Assembly: GCF_006345805.1 (NCBI RefSeq)
Contig: NC_043002.1
Location: 96,844,001-96,908,000 of the forward strand
From: Octopus sinensis
Lineage: Eukaryota
Length of the DNA: 64,000 bases
Direction: 5' to 3'
Shown here piece by piece: positions 46,688-63,237 of the stretch. A program made the translations under genes and the position numbers. Each line of letters starts with the position of its first letter. Position 1 is the stretch's first letter. The notes beneath the pieces are model-generated. The model was not told the DNA's origin. It searched no databases and saw only the letters and a program-made list of their open reading frames with translations.

Positions 46688-46840
46688 CACCAATACATAT
46701 ATATATTGGTGTGGAGAAAACAAGAGAATGAGAGAAAGTGAGATGCACAGGAAAAGGAATTGTGAAATCGTGCGAGGTATGCTTTGATACATATAACAAA
46801 GCATGAAATTAACTCCAACGAATTTCCTACACATTTTCAG

Positions 46841-46972
46841 TTTGCAGAGATCATTCAGAACATTGCATGCAAAATGGTCAACGATGGCCAAGTGTCTACA
46901 AGAATATATGTGTAACACACTATTGTGAAACTAATCGATTACGAACAACACTAAGCACGCGTCATGATTCAA
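46841..46972 (+). CDS. Coding exon 3, cassette B: CRDHSEHCMQNGQRWPSVYKNICVTHYCETNRLRTTLSTRHDS
   Basis: Acceptor acattttcAG, donor GTATGT at 46973, 132 bp, open phase 1-1 frame. Paralogous exon with identical length and splice positions at 58122. Confidence 0.85.
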
Positions 46973-47249
46973 GTATGTATTTATTTTTAATTTGTCTAAA
47001 TTTATAATCACCATCGCCCCACAAACCGAAGCTACAGATGCGCAAACACACATTCACATTGCCTACTATTTCACCCGTTAATTTACAAAAACGTCTCTCT
47101 CTCTCTTTCTCTCTCTCTCTCTCTCTCTCTCCTCTCTCTCTCTCTCTCTCTCTCTCTCTTACGCACGCACGTTTATGTTGCATCAACGCATTTAGATAGA
47201 GAGAATATCTTTAGCGTCGCATATATTTAGTGCCAAATACATCTAGTTG

Positions 47250-47730
47250 CTGAAGGATAATCCGATACCAGACTTGGATGAAGGTGAGATTTATCAGCAA
47301 TACTGAGCTCCATGTCGCAGATCACGTGCAAAAGAACAGAGTCTGGTTGATGAAGGTGTTACCGTATTCAAAGATTGACCAACTCAGAACCCTGACTTAA
47401 ATATCATCGAGAAAATGTGGACAGAACAAAAGGGAAGAGTTCGTCAGAAAAATCCATGCAGTCTAGAAGAAATGTGGGAGCTCAGGCACAGAGAATGGCG
47501 CCTCACACCTGTGAAGATGGTGAAGGATTTGTACACAACTCTTCCCAGGCGCATCGAAGCCATTATTGAAGCTATGGGAAGTCACACGAAATATTAACAA
47601 TGTAAAGTAACTTCTTGAAATGAACATTAGTTACTAAATTTTCATTAAAGATATTTTTCTGGTTTAAAACACTGCAATTAGTAGAAATTTCCAATAGTAT
47701 AAAGTGGCTGAAGACGTTTTCACGGTACTG
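47250..47730 (+). mobile_element. Tc1 transposase 3' remnant
   Basis: PTQNPDLNIIEKMW...LPRRIEAIIEAMGSHTKY* matches the SPDLNPIENLW...GGHTKY C-terminus of DD34E transposases. Confidence 0.8.
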
Positions 47731-48223
47731 TGATAGATGGGTAAAATGGAATATACGAGAAACTTTATTGTTCACAACAATCGTTTCGACTTATCCTGCA
47801 TTGATCTCTCATGAATGGAAAACTGTACAACCGGTTGTAGTGCATTCCTTGCTTCAGATACGTCTCGTCAGATGATGTTATAAGGTATAACTCATTAAAT
47901 AAACTGTTTCGCTCGATTTTAATGCAGCATGTTGTCAGTGACCGTAGGCTCAAGCCATTCGGCAGGAATGACGTGGAACAGATTTTGTTGCAATTTTACA
48001 GAGGAAGACAGGGAGTAATAAAGACAAATAATAAGAAAAATAAAACACAATAAAGTAAAACATTGTGTGCGTCAGAACCCAGATATAATTATTTCCGTAC
48101 CCAAACTTGCTGTCCTGCGTACACAGACACACACACGTGTGTGTGTGTGTGTTTGTGTCGCCACAACAGTGGTTCGGAAACTTGTCGGGTAGCGTGAATT
48201 ATTTCAACTACATATTGCCGATC

Positions 48224-48538
48224 TGGAGGCACAATGGCCCAGTGGTTAGGTCAGCGGACTCGCGGTCGGCAGATCGCAGTTTCGATTCCCGGATCGGGCG
48301 TTGTGCGTGTTTATTGAGCGAAAACACCTAAAGCTCCACGAGGCTCCGGCAGGGGTGCTGGCGACCCCTGTTGTACTCTTTCGCCCCAACTTTCTCTCAC
48401 TCTTTCTTCCTGTTTCGTGAGTAACGCTGCGATGGAGTGGCATCTCGTCCAGCTGGAGGGAACACATAAGACATAGAAACCGGGAAACCGGGCCCATGAG
48501 CCTGGCTAGGCTGGAAAAGGGCGCTTAAATAAAAAAAA
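48224..48538 (+). mobile_element. SINE family B, full length
   Basis: tRNA-like head, tail ...gggcccatgagcctggctaggct, A-run. Confidence 0.85.
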
Positions 48539-49665
48539 CATATTGCCGATTCGTCTTGATAAGACAACATTTGCATGGTTTGTTTTCCACGTTGATCTCT
48601 CTAAGCTTTTTCATCCTGAATGGTTTTGGCTCGAAACTGGTTGAATTAGCGAGAAATTCGAACATGTATAACTGGTGGAATAACCTTATGTACGCATGTT
48701 CACGAATATATGTATGTAAGTATATACGTGCGTACGTAACGTATGTATGTGTGTATGTAAATATGTATGTATGTATGCATGTATGTATGTATGCATGTAT
48801 GCACACACGCACGCAAATGTAGTATTAAATTAATTTGCCTTTCAAAGGCATATATATATATATACATATACATATATATATGTGTGTGTGTGTGTATGTA
48901 TATATACACATATACATATATATATATATATATATATACATATACATATATATATATGTGTGTGTGTGTGTGTGTGTATACACATATACATATATATATA
49001 TATATATATATATATACATATATACACACACATACATACACACACATACACACACATACACACACATGCATGTAGTGTGTGTGAGAGAGAGGAGAGACAG
49101 ATAAAGCGAAACGGCTGGGCGTGAGAAAGAGAGAGAGCACATATATCTTTTTAAAATTTACTCCTGTTAATCTACAAAAGTTTATTAACACATCTACTTA
49201 TTTCCATTTCTATATTCTTACCTATTTCGTTTACATACTTTCACAATTATATGCAAATAAGTATAGGTTTCGAGTGTTTATGGTTTGCTCCTGTGTATGT
49301 AGTATGCAGTTATGCGTGTATCGCACAAAGCTTTAAACGGGATGAAATATAATCACGATGTATCAGTCATATAGAATGGCATAAAACACTATTTTCGCAT
49401 TCCCGTTACTTTACATCTGCAACTACCTGCACACGTTTTCAAGTATATAACATAATGAATTTTTCTGGGTCTTTTCGTTTAAGTGCACGTCCTTCATTAT
49501 GAAACAAAATTCTGAAGGAAATAAAATGTATACATGTGTCTATTTACCATAAAACAGCTCTGCTGTCACGGTACACGAGATCAATTGACTGGCCTAATGA
49601 TATAAGCTCCTCACATTTTAACATATGAAATTTATTCGCAGCATATATACAGCATATTTACATAA

Positions 49666-60726: not shown

Positions 60727-61767
60727 CGTTGTCGAGCGGTTACCGTTTACATCTCGTTCAGAGATAGGGGAGGGCGCAAGAAGTAGTTGTATTAGTTTAA
60801 CGCTCGAAAAGAATGGAAAAGTCTTTGACGTTTCGAGCCTACGTTCTTCGACAAAAAGGGATGAGAGGTAAAAATGGAGAATGAAAAAACGGAGAGACAT
60901 TCCATCGTCTACAACTACCTGTTCTGCAGTTGATCTCATCAACAGAACGGACCGCTTGTGAAATTAACACGCAAAATACTGAGCACTCCATGGGCAGGCG
61001 TACCCATAACGTAGTCGTAAGAGAGATACGACGTGACACACAGAATGTGGCAAGACTGGCCCTTTGGATTACAGCTACAACTCATTTTGTGTGTTTGCAT
61101 CTATCTTCAAAAAGTACCGTTGCCAAAACAGTTGGCCGTGTCAAATATTTAGCGTTCACAAAGCTGCGCTCAATCATGTAACTCTCTCTCCTCAGAAACA
61201 GGTGTCAACTACCGAGGTAACCATTTGAACATAATTCGATATATCATACGTCTTCCATCATTTACTGTAATGTTTTGTGACAAGAGTCCAGTTGTTCCGT
61301 AAGTTCTCTGTTACAGTGAATTATTTCGACTACACCTTGACGATTCGTTTTAACAGTCGCAGTTCAGAGACAACATTTGCGTGGTTTGTTTTCAATGCTG
61401 GTGTCTCTTCTTTAAACGACTTCATCCTATTCCCTTTTGGTTAGAAACCAGTTCTCTTTGGATTGAGAAATTCGAAAAGTAAAGCCAGTGAAGCAATTGC
61501 AGATATATGTGGGGTGTGGGGTATGTGTGTGCGTGCGTGTGTGTGTACAAACGCGTGAGTGTTTGTCTTTATATTGTGTATGACACATAGAAATCTATTT
61601 CAATTTAGAACTGCTGTATATAACAGATATATGTATCTGTATATATACATAGATACATATATACGCGCACACAGACACACACACACGCACAAATATCTAT
61701 GTGTATATATATATATATATATATATATATATATATATATATAATGTATATATATATACTATGTGCA

Positions 61768-62322
61768 TGTCCGGAAAGTTCGTGCCGATTTATAGTAGCT
61801 TCCTTTCGACTTATTTTAGAACATGGTTGAGTCCAGAAAATAGGATTTGACTACACCTCCATTTAGAGCACAGTTTAAGCTATCTTTTCGTGGAAGAAGG
61901 TTTATGTTCCTATAACCTGTATTAATTCTGTAACCATTTAAAATGAAAGTTCATTTTCGGCACTTGATGCTTTGGGAACCAGATAAAAATTGCTGCAGCT
62001 CGGCTAGGATGTGTTAACCACCTACCCTCCATATTCACCCGGTATTGCTCCTTCGGATTTCCACTTATTCAGGTCTCTGCAGAATAGTCTTAATGGTAAA
62101 AATTTTAATTCTTTGGATGACGTAAAAAGATACCTTGATGAATTCTTTGCCATGAAACCACCTCAATTCTGGGAAGAGAGTATTTTCAAGTTAAAGGAAA
62201 GATGGAGACGCATTGTGCAACAAAATGGTTCATATTTGGTTGATTAAAAATGTAATGGCACGTATTTATTAACCTTTTTCTTTCCTTTAAAAATCGGCAC
62301 GAATTTTCCGGACAACCCAATA
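61768..62322 (+). mobile_element. Mariner internal-deletion derivative
   Basis: Same TIRs as 321-552. N-terminal MKVHFRHLMLWE fused to PYSPGIAPSDFHLFRSLQN...WRRIVQQNGSYLVD (YSPDLAPSD motif). Confidence 0.88.
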
Positions 62323-62519
62323 TTTCACTGCCCCAGAGAAATAATCACCTCAAATTTCTATGTTACCATATTTGCACGCAGAGAATTTACAGAAATTTCA
62401 AGCTATTCCTTTAATCATTATATACTGATAAAATTAGGTGGGGGTCTTGAATCGTTATAGCCAATATGTTTGTTTTCCATTAAGGCATTCGTTAAAAACG
62501 GAATTATTTTATTTTATAG

Positions 62520-62587
62520 TTTGCACAGTGGATCACATACTGCTGGACATACTGAAGTTTTACTATCCGGCATTGAACTATTGTTAA
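62520..62587 (+). CDS. Terminal coding exon, cassette C: CTVDHILLDILKFYYPALNYC*
   Basis: Acceptor attttattttatAG, same phase and TGT TAA end as 50120-50187, offset exactly 12400 bp. Flanking intron and 3'UTR are also homologous. Confidence 0.78.
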
Positions 62588-62625
62588 AACAAAATCGTTA
62601 TTGATTTTCCTTGTAATTTTTCGTC

Positions 62626-62631
62626 AATAAA
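62626..62631 (+). promoter_or_regulatory. Candidate polyadenylation signal, cassette C
   Basis: AATAAA ~40 bp after the stop. The homologous position in cassette B reads AATAAG. Confidence 0.35.
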
Positions 62632-63237
62632 AGTAAATACCAGTGTTTTATAATGTAGTGTTATTTGTAAAGAGAACTGTATCTAGACAACAAATATTGA
62701 GGTATTCCCAATGTGCCTTATAATAAGCTCAACTACTCGTATTTGTTTGCGTGTTCCTTAAATTTTGAGGAAACTGTCCCCGATAGAGAAAAAAACCTTT
62801 CAAATAACATACATTTAAAAATAAGTCCTTTTGCTTAAAATTACTACCTATACAATTCTATAACCTAGTTCATTCAAAATAGAAGGAGTAGTTCCTCATA
62901 CCATCACAGAGTAAGAAATTCTCTCCAATAGTGAAAGACATATGTTCAGATGAAAACAGATACGTATTTATGAAAAGTGAGAGACGCTAACAAACATACA
63001 AGTGAATCGCATAGAAAAGAGATAATTTCAATCATTCACACAGACACACACATATACACGTACATGCACATATACACATACGAACACATGAAATTCTCAA
63101 ACACACACATAAGACGAAAGCATACATAAGTGCCCCAGGGGTGAAGGGTCGATGTATGTAACGCATGCAGTGCATGCGTTACTATTTTTTTCGCTACAAA
63201 TAATTTTTGCTTCATATTAAGTTAATTATTGTGTTTT

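Follow-up and report, generated by a model that had tools for sequence, protein, structure and literature searches.

Two homologous terminal-exon cassettes in a gene for a secreted 12-cysteine protein of Octopus sinensis: a candidate for alternative-last-exon choice

Does a gene whose 5′ exons are present once and whose 3′ end is present in two intact copies make one protein or two? The question is raised by the 64,000-nucleotide stretch of Octopus sinensis DNA analysed here (the window). On balance, the window as a whole is best explained as one gene for a secreted protein of 133 amino acids and 12 Cys residues, its exons encoding, in turn, the signal peptide, modules of six and four Cys, and a tail with two. 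The gene is unannotated in O. sinensis and is flagged here. Neither a protein model nor a transcript-derived ORF for it was found for O. sinensis or O. vulgaris in the collections searched, and the protein collections searched yielded neither isoform nor a close homologue from these two species. The coding exons are as follows.

35294-35372, plus strand: signal-peptide exon, from the ATG to a phase-1 donor (ATA/GTAAGT); single copy, probably common to both cassettes
38343-38465, plus strand: module-1 exon, six Cys, phase 1-1; single copy in this genome region
46841-46972, plus strand: exon B3, module 2, four Cys, 132 nt; donor CAA/GTATGT
50120-50187, plus strand: coding part of exon B4, 68 nt, two Cys, stop TAA (50185-50187)
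58122-58253, plus strand: exon C3, module 2, four Cys, 132 nt; donor TTG/GTAAGT
62520-62587, plus strand: coding part of exon C4, 68 nt, two Cys, stop TAA (62585-62587)

A preliminary description of this DNA had reported that the pair B3 and B4 recurs as C3 and C4, and its coordinates match ours. The cassettes are alike in length, frame and TAA stop, and all splice boundaries are AG/GT, the acceptors lying at 46840/46841 in B and 58121/58122 in C; the B3 donor (GTATGT) is weaker than the GTAAGT of C and of Octopus bimaculoides. At the peptide level B3 and C3 match with E=3e-19 (67% amino acid identity), and B4 and C4 with E~1e-6. With the signal exon set to 35294-35372 all junctions are in phase 1, also as described, and the four exon combinations in frame (signal-module 1-B3-B4, signal-module 1-C3-C4, a B3-C4 chimera and B3-C3-C4) translate free of stops. 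Isoforms B and C would be 133 aa each, with the same N-terminal half and C-terminal halves that are 58% identical. No disabling mutation, whether frameshift, stop, lost splice site or lost structural Cys, was found in either cassette. The homology reported for the flanks is likewise present, in two blocks.

46714-47006, plus strand: block 1, B copy; exon B3 with 127 nt of the intron before it and 34 nt of the intron after it
58006-58283, plus strand: block 1, C copy; 75.5% identical to the B copy
49984-50647, plus strand: block 2, B copy; intron end, exon B4, 3′UTR and 3′ flank
62385-63055, plus strand: block 2, C copy; 75.6% identical to the B copy

The interval 50.9-58.1 kb contains no signal-like or module-1-like exon, in keeping with the earlier reading, nor does the stretch from B4 to C3 (50.6-58.1 kb) contain a homolog of proximal intron 2. 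The suggestion that more cassettes might lie beyond 64 kb did not hold: the 30 kb beyond the window revealed no third cassette or common downstream exon, and a scan of the 2.72-Gb genome found no copy of exon 3 or of the exon-4 block beyond the two.

The gene belongs to an octopus-only family of secreted 12-Cys proteins which has no name and no Pfam model. The family pattern is a signal peptide followed by CxGC...CxC...C....C (6 Cys), C......C..............C....C (4 Cys) and a 2-Cys tail, each module residing on one phase-1 exon of a four-exon architecture, with lengths of 126-155 aa. Members share the four exons, the 6+4+2 Cys arrangement and the signal peptide with the gene studied; they include LOC128248081, LOC128248170, LOC106872966, LOC106872050, LOC128248169, LOC106869804 and LOC106869796 of O. 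bimaculoides, and LOC118763715 of O. sinensis. Paralogs are recovered by phmmer with E-values of 1e-24 to 6e-4. Both isoforms fit the family alignment, in which ten Cys columns are invariant or nearly so, the exception being B3, which carries Glu where Gly is invariant in ten family members; B also departs from the C-terminal motif of the family. Modules 1 and 2 are old duplicates of each other. Among the O. bimaculoides relatives, P0008 and P0017-19 have alternative last exons, and P0021 is a five-module, fused two-gene product. The alternative 3′ ends predicted for LOC128248169 do not come from duplicated cassettes but from shifted acceptors or small unrelated exons. Some 10 kb before the start of the window lies another member of the 12-Cys family.

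The O. bimaculoides ortholog, LOC128248178 (P0001, 133 aa; 65-70% identical), differs from the O. sinensis gene in having a single terminal cassette; the apparent absence of B there is to be read with the small N gaps that the assembly has in intron 2, including L025 14313-14327. Its signal exon (L025 10001-10079) and module-1 exon (L025 11787-11909) are orthologous to those listed above. C3 and C4 are the orthologs of its exons 3 and 4, and its cassette, the intron within it and the flanks are collinear with C. More broadly, collinearity of its introns 2 and 3 and of its downstream flank extends to 38.3-40.5 kb, to 54.6-56.7 kb, and to C3, its intron and C4 as well as to sequence beyond the window. 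From this collinearity it follows that C represents the ancestral 3′ end and B an extra copy within the former intron 2, the reverse of the implicit assumption of the preliminary description that B is the main copy and C the addition. Relative-rate counts of unique noncoding changes also place the root on the B branch, with 100 in B against 20 in C (p=3e-13); the 20 in C and 27 in O. bimaculoides do not differ significantly. Both comparisons thus take C for the original and B for the insertion.

The remaining intron sequence contains the following features.

40848-43091, minus strand: decayed non-LTR retrotransposon (RVT_1 and zf-RVT fragments), upstream of B3 in the intron that follows module 1
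51251-52120, plus strand: piece of a GIY-YIG endonuclease ORF from a transposon (probably Penelope-like), between B and C
54582-54682 and 55513-56690, plus strand: remnants of ancestral intron 2, orthologous to L025 14944-16357

Because of the last of these, the B-to-C interval is recognized as an old intron, and the content of 50.6-58.1 kb is ancestral distal intron 2 plus transposon fragments. The statement that the introns of the two cassettes carry entirely different transposons needs correction, since the C intron is mostly ancestral (85-88% identity to the O. bimaculoides intron) and the B intron retains collinear remnants at 48152-48222, 48562-48965 and 49046-49462.

The duplication had been described as old, and the noncoding distances bear this out. 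K2P values are 0.219 for B-C, 0.235 for B-O. bimaculoides and 0.089 for C-O. bimaculoides, with a neutral interspecies distance of 0.119 over 10.3 kb; the B-C distance is thus about 1.9 times the neutral species divergence, which dates the duplication before the O. sinensis/O. bimaculoides split. No indel separates B from C in 200 coding nucleotides, against 18 events in 684 flanking sites. In neutral simulations with a B branch length of 0.18 substitutions per site, B remained intact (frame, no stop, six Cys and splice dinucleotides) with a probability of about 3e-4, and its intactness is therefore very unlikely without selection. The chance of C staying intact neutrally since the species split is 0.06-0.15, so that its intactness in O. 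sinensis is statistically uninformative. Substitution patterns are neutral-looking in both: C on the O. sinensis branch evolved at about the neutral rate with an N:S of 12:2, and B has the substitution rate of its flanks and an overall N:S of 25:5, the neutral expectation. Divergence was 16.2% for coding and 10.8% for neighbouring noncoding sequence (p=7e-4); faster divergence of the coding part indicates a live gene under diversifying pressure.

Each copy has its own AATAAA, as had been noted, and is followed by a conserved noncoding element.

50308-50313, plus strand: B poly(A) signal AATAAA, 121 nt past the stop
62626-62631, plus strand: C poly(A) signal AATAAA, 39 nt past the stop
50374-50443, plus strand: 70-nt conserved noncoding element, B side; 3 differences from the C copy
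62790-62860, plus strand: 70-nt conserved noncoding element, C side; 2 differences from O. bimaculoides

The position of the C signal is the same as in O. bimaculoides (L025 27617), and the ancestral hexamer about 40 nt past the stop reads AATAAG in B. The 70-nt element is about 96% conserved, with 3 differences between B and C against an expectation of about 15, and 2/71 between C and O. bimaculoides against one of about 7.7. It occurs at only two sites genome-wide, one downstream of each cassette.

Both copies thus keep frame, six Cys, splice sites, a poly(A) signal and the 70-nt element, and they apparently share one promoter-proximal exon pair, which makes alternative-last-exon choice the likeliest arrangement; that it yields two 133-aa isoforms is, from the sequence, somewhat probable. 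On this reading a duplication at the DNA level, older than the parting of the two species, copied the last two coding exons with their intron, the 3′UTR and about 460 bp of 3′ flank; the distal copy C (58.1-63.1 kb) is the original, and the proximal copy B (46.7-50.6 kb) lies inside the former intron 2. For isoform B, module 1 would be spliced to B3-B4, with cleavage near 50.33 kb; for isoform C, B would be skipped and its poly(A) site read through, module 1 being spliced to C3-C4 with cleavage near 62.65 kb. If the duplication was partial, the single 5′ set, the two intact cassettes, their age, selection on B and the ancestral status of C together imply that both were used from one promoter in the common ancestor, and we infer that both are probably spliced in O. 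sinensis today. Relatives in O. bimaculoides with several modules or alternative last exons count in favour; against this, B comes first with a good acceptor and could capture all transcripts, and O. bimaculoides manages with one cassette. Of the earlier proposal of a constant N-terminus joined to variable C-termini, the part that stands rests on the single 5′ exon set and the two intact, in-frame cassettes with poly(A) signals, while the further cassettes it foresaw drop out.

The capture of transcripts by B may have gone to completion, in which case all of them are spliced to B3-B4 and finish at the poly(A) site of B, leaving C in O. sinensis as an orphaned relic that has not yet decayed. 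B is proximal, with canonical sites and its own AATAAA, and C has an approximately neutral rate on the O. sinensis branch, an N:S of 12:2 and a probability of 0.06-0.15 of being intact by chance. Yet C stayed functional downstream of B until the species split, and O. bimaculoides uses it still, which implies that reading through and skipping B worked in the ancestor; nor has C lost the AATAAA of the ancestor, the conserved 70-nt element or GTAAGT, the stronger of the two donors. We regard such a takeover as unlikely. The converse, that B is a silent pair of pseudo-exons in intron 2 and module 1 is spliced to C3-C4 as in O. bimaculoides, would agree with the making of the protein without B in that species, the weaker B3 donor GTATGT, the Gly-to-Glu change at an invariant position and a B substitution rate equal to that of the flanks. 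It is very improbable in view of what B has kept (no indels, no stops, six Cys, three splice sites and a replacement AATAAA, with a joint chance of about 3e-4) and of the conservation of the downstream 70-nt element in B. Of the disabling mutations that mark orphan pseudo-exons or a decaying partial duplicate there are none in B or C; at the neutral chances of about 3e-4 for B and 0.06-0.15 for C, this speaks against such a class for B, while C could still be a remnant of that kind.

A duplication of the whole gene in tandem might also have left this arrangement, if the second gene then lost its 5′ exons in O. sinensis and unequal crossover in intron 2 fused the two genes in O. bimaculoides; or C might use a new, unrecognised first exon or promoter in 50.7-58.1 kb, as an ordinary or dead paralog. 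The family does grow mainly by whole-gene tandem duplication: there are clusters at C6 (~9.9-10.1 Mb, 19.1-19.3 Mb) and the neighbouring member upstream of the window mentioned above, and the fused product P0021 exists. Such an origin is nevertheless improbable here, as between B4 and C3 there is no trace of a signal exon, a module-1 exon or proximal intron 2, that interval being ancestral distal intron 2 with transposon fragments, and as three events are required rather than two. Finally, the main product could be longer, with B4 skipped and B3 spliced to C3-C4 to give 177 aa, 16 Cys and three modules by internal module addition. B3-C3-C4 is an open frame with every junction in phase 1, modules 1 and 2 are themselves old duplicates, and P0021 has five modules; but if B4 were skipped every time, keeping it with its stop and poly(A) signal would serve no purpose, and we give this reading hardly any credence.

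The two-cassette architecture is a known kind of gene architecture. Calcitonin/CGRP is one example of alternative last exons coupled to alternative polyadenylation (ALE-APA). Control of the proximal poly(A) site is an established means of choosing between a proximal and a distal last exon, Drosophila ewg and nrg being ALE-APA examples (PMC8055025). Shared features are the proximal and distal terminal sets, each with a stop and a poly(A) signal, and probably one promoter with common 5′ exons; whether the proximal set is spliced to or cleaved at would decide the isoform. Here B and C have the same orientation, and each has a 3′ splice site, a stop and AATAAA. Unlike the terminal sets of those examples, the candidate ones here are homologous duplicates for the same kind of domain, each a cassette of two exons rather than a single exon. 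Tandem exon duplication, as in Dscam and human MXE clusters (PMC5740500), likewise involves homologous exons of the same length and phase, of intragenic origin, by which one segment is swapped. There exclusivity stems from splice-site incompatibility or competing RNA pairing, whereas the present cassettes are terminal with their own 3′ ends and exclusivity would come from polyadenylation, the very reason for which terminal-exon candidates were set aside in the MXE study (PMC5740500). Internal mutually exclusive exons of the Dscam type were ruled out, each cassette ending with a stop and poly(A) signal and the next 30 kb holding no common exon. In Drosophila lola and mod(mdg4), constant 5′ exons are combined with many alternative duplicated 3′ cassettes, each of which ends the transcript; the products are nuclear BTB-zinc-finger/FLYWCH proteins. 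The likeness lies in the duplicated 3′ cassettes and the probably shared 5′ exons; here there are exactly two cassettes and the protein is secreted. A multi-cassette array of that type was excluded by the count of exactly two copies in the 2.72-Gb genome, the 30 kb past the window adding no further one.

Should B and C both be in use, the locus would be a clean and datable example of how protein diversity can come from copying a 3′ end and not a whole gene, in a lineage-restricted, fast-evolving secreted family. The sister species either reverted to one cassette or kept one, and the pair thus offers a natural comparison. The practical value would be modest until expression is shown. A more ambitious version, which we consider a long shot, is a small combinatorial diversifier in which one promoter might give B, C, the B3-C4 chimera and the three-module B3-C3-C4, the choice being regulated via the 70-nt element and both cassettes retained past the species split by diversifying selection on the variable half of a secreted ligand or binder. 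Constant-N/variable-C loci would then have a counterpart that encodes a secreted protein, in a gene family specific to cephalopods.

The AlphaFold model (pLDDT 79) consists of two tandem small disulfide-rich beta modules. Its best PDB fold matches by Foldseek are the fibronectin type I (FnI) pairs 8-9FnI and 2-3FnI (probability 0.99-1.0, E 0.007-0.14), with TM-scores of only 0.34-0.51 and sequence identity of 7-14%. The protein differs from fibronectin type I in the six rather than four Cys of module 1 and in an added C-terminal helix. An FnI domain proper, which would call for a PF00039 match and, within some 45 aa per module, four Cys with 1-3 and 2-4 pairing, was rejected, no Pfam match being obtained at E<=1-10 and the fold likeness being weak. 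The predicted tandem FnI-like disulfide modules provide a first structural lead for this octopus-only family.

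The exons of the studied gene, which encodes a 12-Cys secreted protein, are as follows:

35294-35372 (+), signal exon, 79 nt, phase 1, donor ATA/GTAAGT
38343-38465 (+), module-1 exon
46841-46972 (+), exon B3, donor GTATGT
50120-50187 (+), exon B4
58122-58253 (+), exon C3, donor GTAAGT, as in O. bimaculoides
62520-62587 (+), exon C4

In silico translation of the signal and module-1 exons joined to cassette B (B3-B4, isoform B) or to cassette C (C3-C4, isoform C) gives an open frame of 133 aa with 12 Cys in each case, and the combinations B3-C4, C3-B4 and B3-C3-C4 are open as well. 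Tblastn reveals exactly two copies of exon 3 in the window (E=3e-19 between the copies), also two of exon 4, and one copy each of the signal and module-1 exons. The exon borders, open frames and copy numbers confirm the duplicated exon pair reported in the preliminary description. Once low-complexity sequence is masked, DNA homology between the cassettes is limited to 46714-47006 versus 58006-58283 (75.5%) and 49984-50647 versus 62385-63055 (75.6%); collinear remnants within the B and C introns were found by a more sensitive search.

Among 5.8 billion sequences the only close protein is isoform X2 of O. bimaculoides LOC128248178 (133 aa), with identities of 65% to isoform B and 70% to isoform C; isoforms X1 and X3 depart from X2 through an added exon that shifts the frame and through read-on. 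Exact look-ups and word-indexed searches for isoforms B and C among transcript-derived or annotated proteins returned this ortholog only. Its locus (L025) holds a single exon 3 and a single exon 4, and corresponds to the window as follows:

L025 upstream region, signal exon, module 1 and proximal intron 2: window 12.8-40.5 kb, collinear
L025 14944-16357 (distal intron 2): window 54582-56690, collinear
L025 22123-22551: window 57725-57991, collinear
L025 exon 3: C3, collinear
L025 intron 3: C's intron, 85-88% identical
L025 exon 4 and flank: C4 and flank, 87%
L025 28174-29938: 7.4-9.2 kb past the window end, collinear

Since L025 is collinear with C, while B is only 77-80% identical to the corresponding O. 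bimaculoides exons, C is the ancestral, orthologous 3′ end and B the added copy, which corrects the polarity of the preliminary description. Cassette B and approximately 10 kb of surrounding DNA, mostly transposon sequence, lie inside what is intron 2 of the sister species' gene. From this comparison, B must have been lost in O. bimaculoides or be absent from its assembly only; the assembly has small N gaps in intron 2, including one at L025 14313-14327, in the interval where B would lie. The repeat at 43590-44063 was tested as a possible counterpart of L025 14463-14943; orthology between the two would fix the site at which B was inserted. This was dismissed, since the sequence that seems to continue past the repeat end is internal to the repeat and shared with another copy.

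The age of the duplication was estimated from a three-way alignment of B, C and O. bimaculoides over approximately 700 noncoding flank sites. The K2P distances are 0.219 (B-C), 0.235 (B-O. bimaculoides) and 0.089 (C-O. bimaculoides), giving branch lengths of 0.183 for B, 0.037 for C and 0.053 for O. bimaculoides, with 100, 20 and 27 unique changes, respectively. A molecular clock is rejected with O. bimaculoides as outgroup (p=3e-13) and accepted with B as outgroup (p=0.31). Set against the neutral distance between the two species (0.119, from 10.3 kb of orthologous noncoding sequence surrounding the gene), the divergence of B places its split from C and O. bimaculoides about 1.9 times deeper than that of the species; if gene conversion took place, this figure is too low.

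No indels are found in the 200 coding nucleotides, while the flanks have accumulated 18 (B-C), 15 (B-O. bimaculoides) and 5 (C-O. bimaculoides) events. In a neutral simulation from the inferred ancestor, using the branch length and indel rate of B, the cassette kept its frame open together with its six Cys and three splice dinucleotides in 0.03% of runs. The substitutions are nevertheless not of a conservative kind: NG86 dN/dS values are 0.95 (B-C), 0.61 (B-O. bimaculoides) and 0.62 (C-O. bimaculoides), and the nonsynonymous to synonymous counts per branch are 25:5 for B, 12:2 for C and 5:4 for O. bimaculoides (C versus O. bimaculoides, Fisher p=0.16). Across all four exons, 65 of 402 coding sites (16.2%) differ from O. 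bimaculoides, as against 10.8% in the neighbouring 10.3 kb of noncoding DNA, intronic and intergenic (p=7e-4). This faster divergence of exons suggests diversifying selection on the whole gene; the cysteine scaffold and frame are fixed and the residues between the Cys change rapidly, a pattern which is that of diversifying secreted proteins.

We propose that a partial duplication would have left B and C behind a single promoter until the species split, with B remaining intact throughout that interval. Cassette C would have stayed functional, because O. bimaculoides still uses a C-type 3′ end. With B intact and C functional, the ancestor must on this reading have used both, choosing the proximal or the distal terminal cassette. 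Such a choice of last exon is the established mechanism of alternative last exons coupled to alternative polyadenylation (PMC8055025). Nothing visible has changed in O. sinensis, so dual use is taken as the likeliest state, and the chance that both cassettes are used in this species today appears somewhat better than even.

In the same simulation the integrity of C survived in 6-15% of runs, which is uninformative, and C may now be an orphan, a reading we regard as possible though doubtful. The locus could also be the remnant of two complete genes, or C could have come under a new private promoter. The module-1 peptide has its sole match in this region at 38342-38464 (the module-1 exon) in a search of the genome, and a sensitive blastn comparison between 34.0-40.5 kb and 50.6-58.0 kb gave microsatellite matches only; these searches and tblastn agree with the preliminary description that no second signal or module-1 exon lies between B and C. 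We consider this pair of readings unlikely. The silencing of B is less credible still. B deviates more than C from the family consensus, with KLYHP in place of the KFYYP or similar of C and the paralogs, and residue 6 of the module in B3 is Glu where C3, the ortholog and all ten aligned family members have Gly (CxDxxGxC); this substitution represents either a changed function or a first step of decay. Least probable is that the main product is the three-module B3-C3-C4 protein.

The switchable C-terminus put forward in the preliminary description is thus supported in part, as a choice between two cassettes of which C is the older. Its expectation of more cassettes beyond 64 kb is refuted: tblastn found none in the 30 kb downstream of the window, and searches of the whole 2.72-Gb genome with the B3 peptide and the 636-nt exon-4 block returned the B and C loci as the sole cassette copies, the other B3-peptide matches being distant family members only, at C6 about 9.96-10.11 Mb and 19.06-19.26 Mb. 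The gene is akin to tandem-duplicated mutually exclusive exons (PMC5740500) in its origin by intragenic duplication, but its cassettes are terminal; lola and mod(mdg4) have many cassettes and the octopus gene only two, and it is hence far from that type. Judged from its sequence, the architecture is one of alternative last exons made by intragenic duplication, a kind already known. It offers a neat, datable case in an uncharacterised octopus-only family, unsurprising in kind.

The ancestral AATAAA, 39 nt past the stop, is retained in both C (62626) and O. bimaculoides (L025 27617). At this site B reads AATAAG; its own AATAAA is at 50308, a position with AATAAG or AGTAAG in the other two. A conserved noncoding block of 70 nt lies downstream of each cassette:

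50374-50443, block downstream of B
62790-62860, block downstream of C
L025 27779-27849, block in O. bimaculoides

The B and C copies of this block differ at 3 positions versus approximately 15 expected (about 96% identical, the duplicates being otherwise 76%), and C and O. bimaculoides at 2; the p value of 7e-5 is uncorrected, the block having been picked from a scan of many windows. It is the best-conserved stretch of the whole duplicate, above the exons, and is a candidate regulatory or 3′UTR element. No further copy was found in the genome beyond the B and C sites, RNA structure prediction showed no signal (z from -0.7 to +0.3), and Rfam returned only sub-threshold microsatellite artefacts.

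The interval from B to C contains a GIY-YIG transposon ORF and ancestral intron. Transposon-derived open frames are:

51251-52120 (+), GIY-YIG endonuclease open frame, 289 aa, scoring 30 bits and so over the Pfam cut-off
40848-43684 (-), ORF fragments (RVT_1, zf-RVT) from decayed non-LTR retrotransposon sequence, in the intron that separates module 1 from B3

The former is probably a fragment of a Penelope-like element; the latter carry poly-Glu/Lys and poly-Ile low-complexity runs. A short interspersed repeat occurs as two direct copies (89%) in B's intron (48221-48523 and 49665-49967), also at 2910-3073 and 4974-5137, with further copies downstream. The same intron has a sub-threshold match to the type I hammerhead ribozyme at 47770-47877 (-; Rfam 23.9 bits, gathering score 34), which might be part of a retroelement. 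C's intron contains, as an insertion relative to O. bimaculoides, a MITE-like, perfect-arm foldback of approximately 440 bp in all (60284-60726; self reverse-complement, 84%).

Pfam gave no match above threshold for either isoform or for ten family members, a CxC6 match being rejected at 16.6 bits (cut-off 27.5), and a profile search of PDB sequences returned noise only. Phmmer against 1.84 billion representative proteins gave 13 matches at E<=0.001. Two of these (P0010 and P0011) are unrelated proteins and were judged spurious; the others, 98-168 aa long, are unnamed octopus proteins that share the signal/6-Cys/4-Cys/2-Cys layout. Most of them are on the same chromosome. Modules 1 and 2 are distant duplicates of each other. 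No publication on the octopus 12-Cys family came up when the literature was searched for locus names and for the topic. Single-sequence AlphaFold prediction was unusable (pLDDT 35); the model of the ortholog from a ten-sequence alignment (pLDDT 79) has beta hairpins and sheets and a C-terminal helix from exon 4. Its best PDB fold matches are pairs of fibronectin type I modules, which are weak (E 0.007-0.14, TM 0.34-0.51), and we treat this modelled resemblance as a structural lead, not as family membership.

Several alternative 3′ ends are present in the NCBI models for the ortholog and for its paralog LOC128248169 (locus L029), at L025 25072-25137 and 23286-23309 and at L029 16879-16902 and 18143-18172. 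They comprise an additional exon that shifts the frame, a short alternative last exon whose product ends in FCAWFEDC, and a shifted acceptor. Those of LOC128248169 were examined as duplicated cassettes and rejected. Variability of the 3′ end may be common in the octopus 12-Cys family, or may be splicing noise. The paralog cluster lies 0.45 Mb from the gene in O. bimaculoides (CM046606.1, 106.76 versus 107.21 Mb) and approximately 87 Mb from it in O. sinensis, where both are on one chromosome (C6 about 9.96-10.11 versus 96.87 Mb). The contrast stems either from a large rearrangement within the chromosome or from a difference in scaffolding. A divergent family member is located at C6 about 96833810-96834650 (-), 9.4-10.2 kb upstream of the window start (stretches L030/L031), on the strand opposite to the studied gene; its module-1-like exon encodes CSGCRHKGKCICNNTYGFYISKGECLKIMC and its module-2-like exon CIDNDGKCLSAGDFRFGLQKHRCVAFYC. 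The studied gene is thus not the lone family member at this site.
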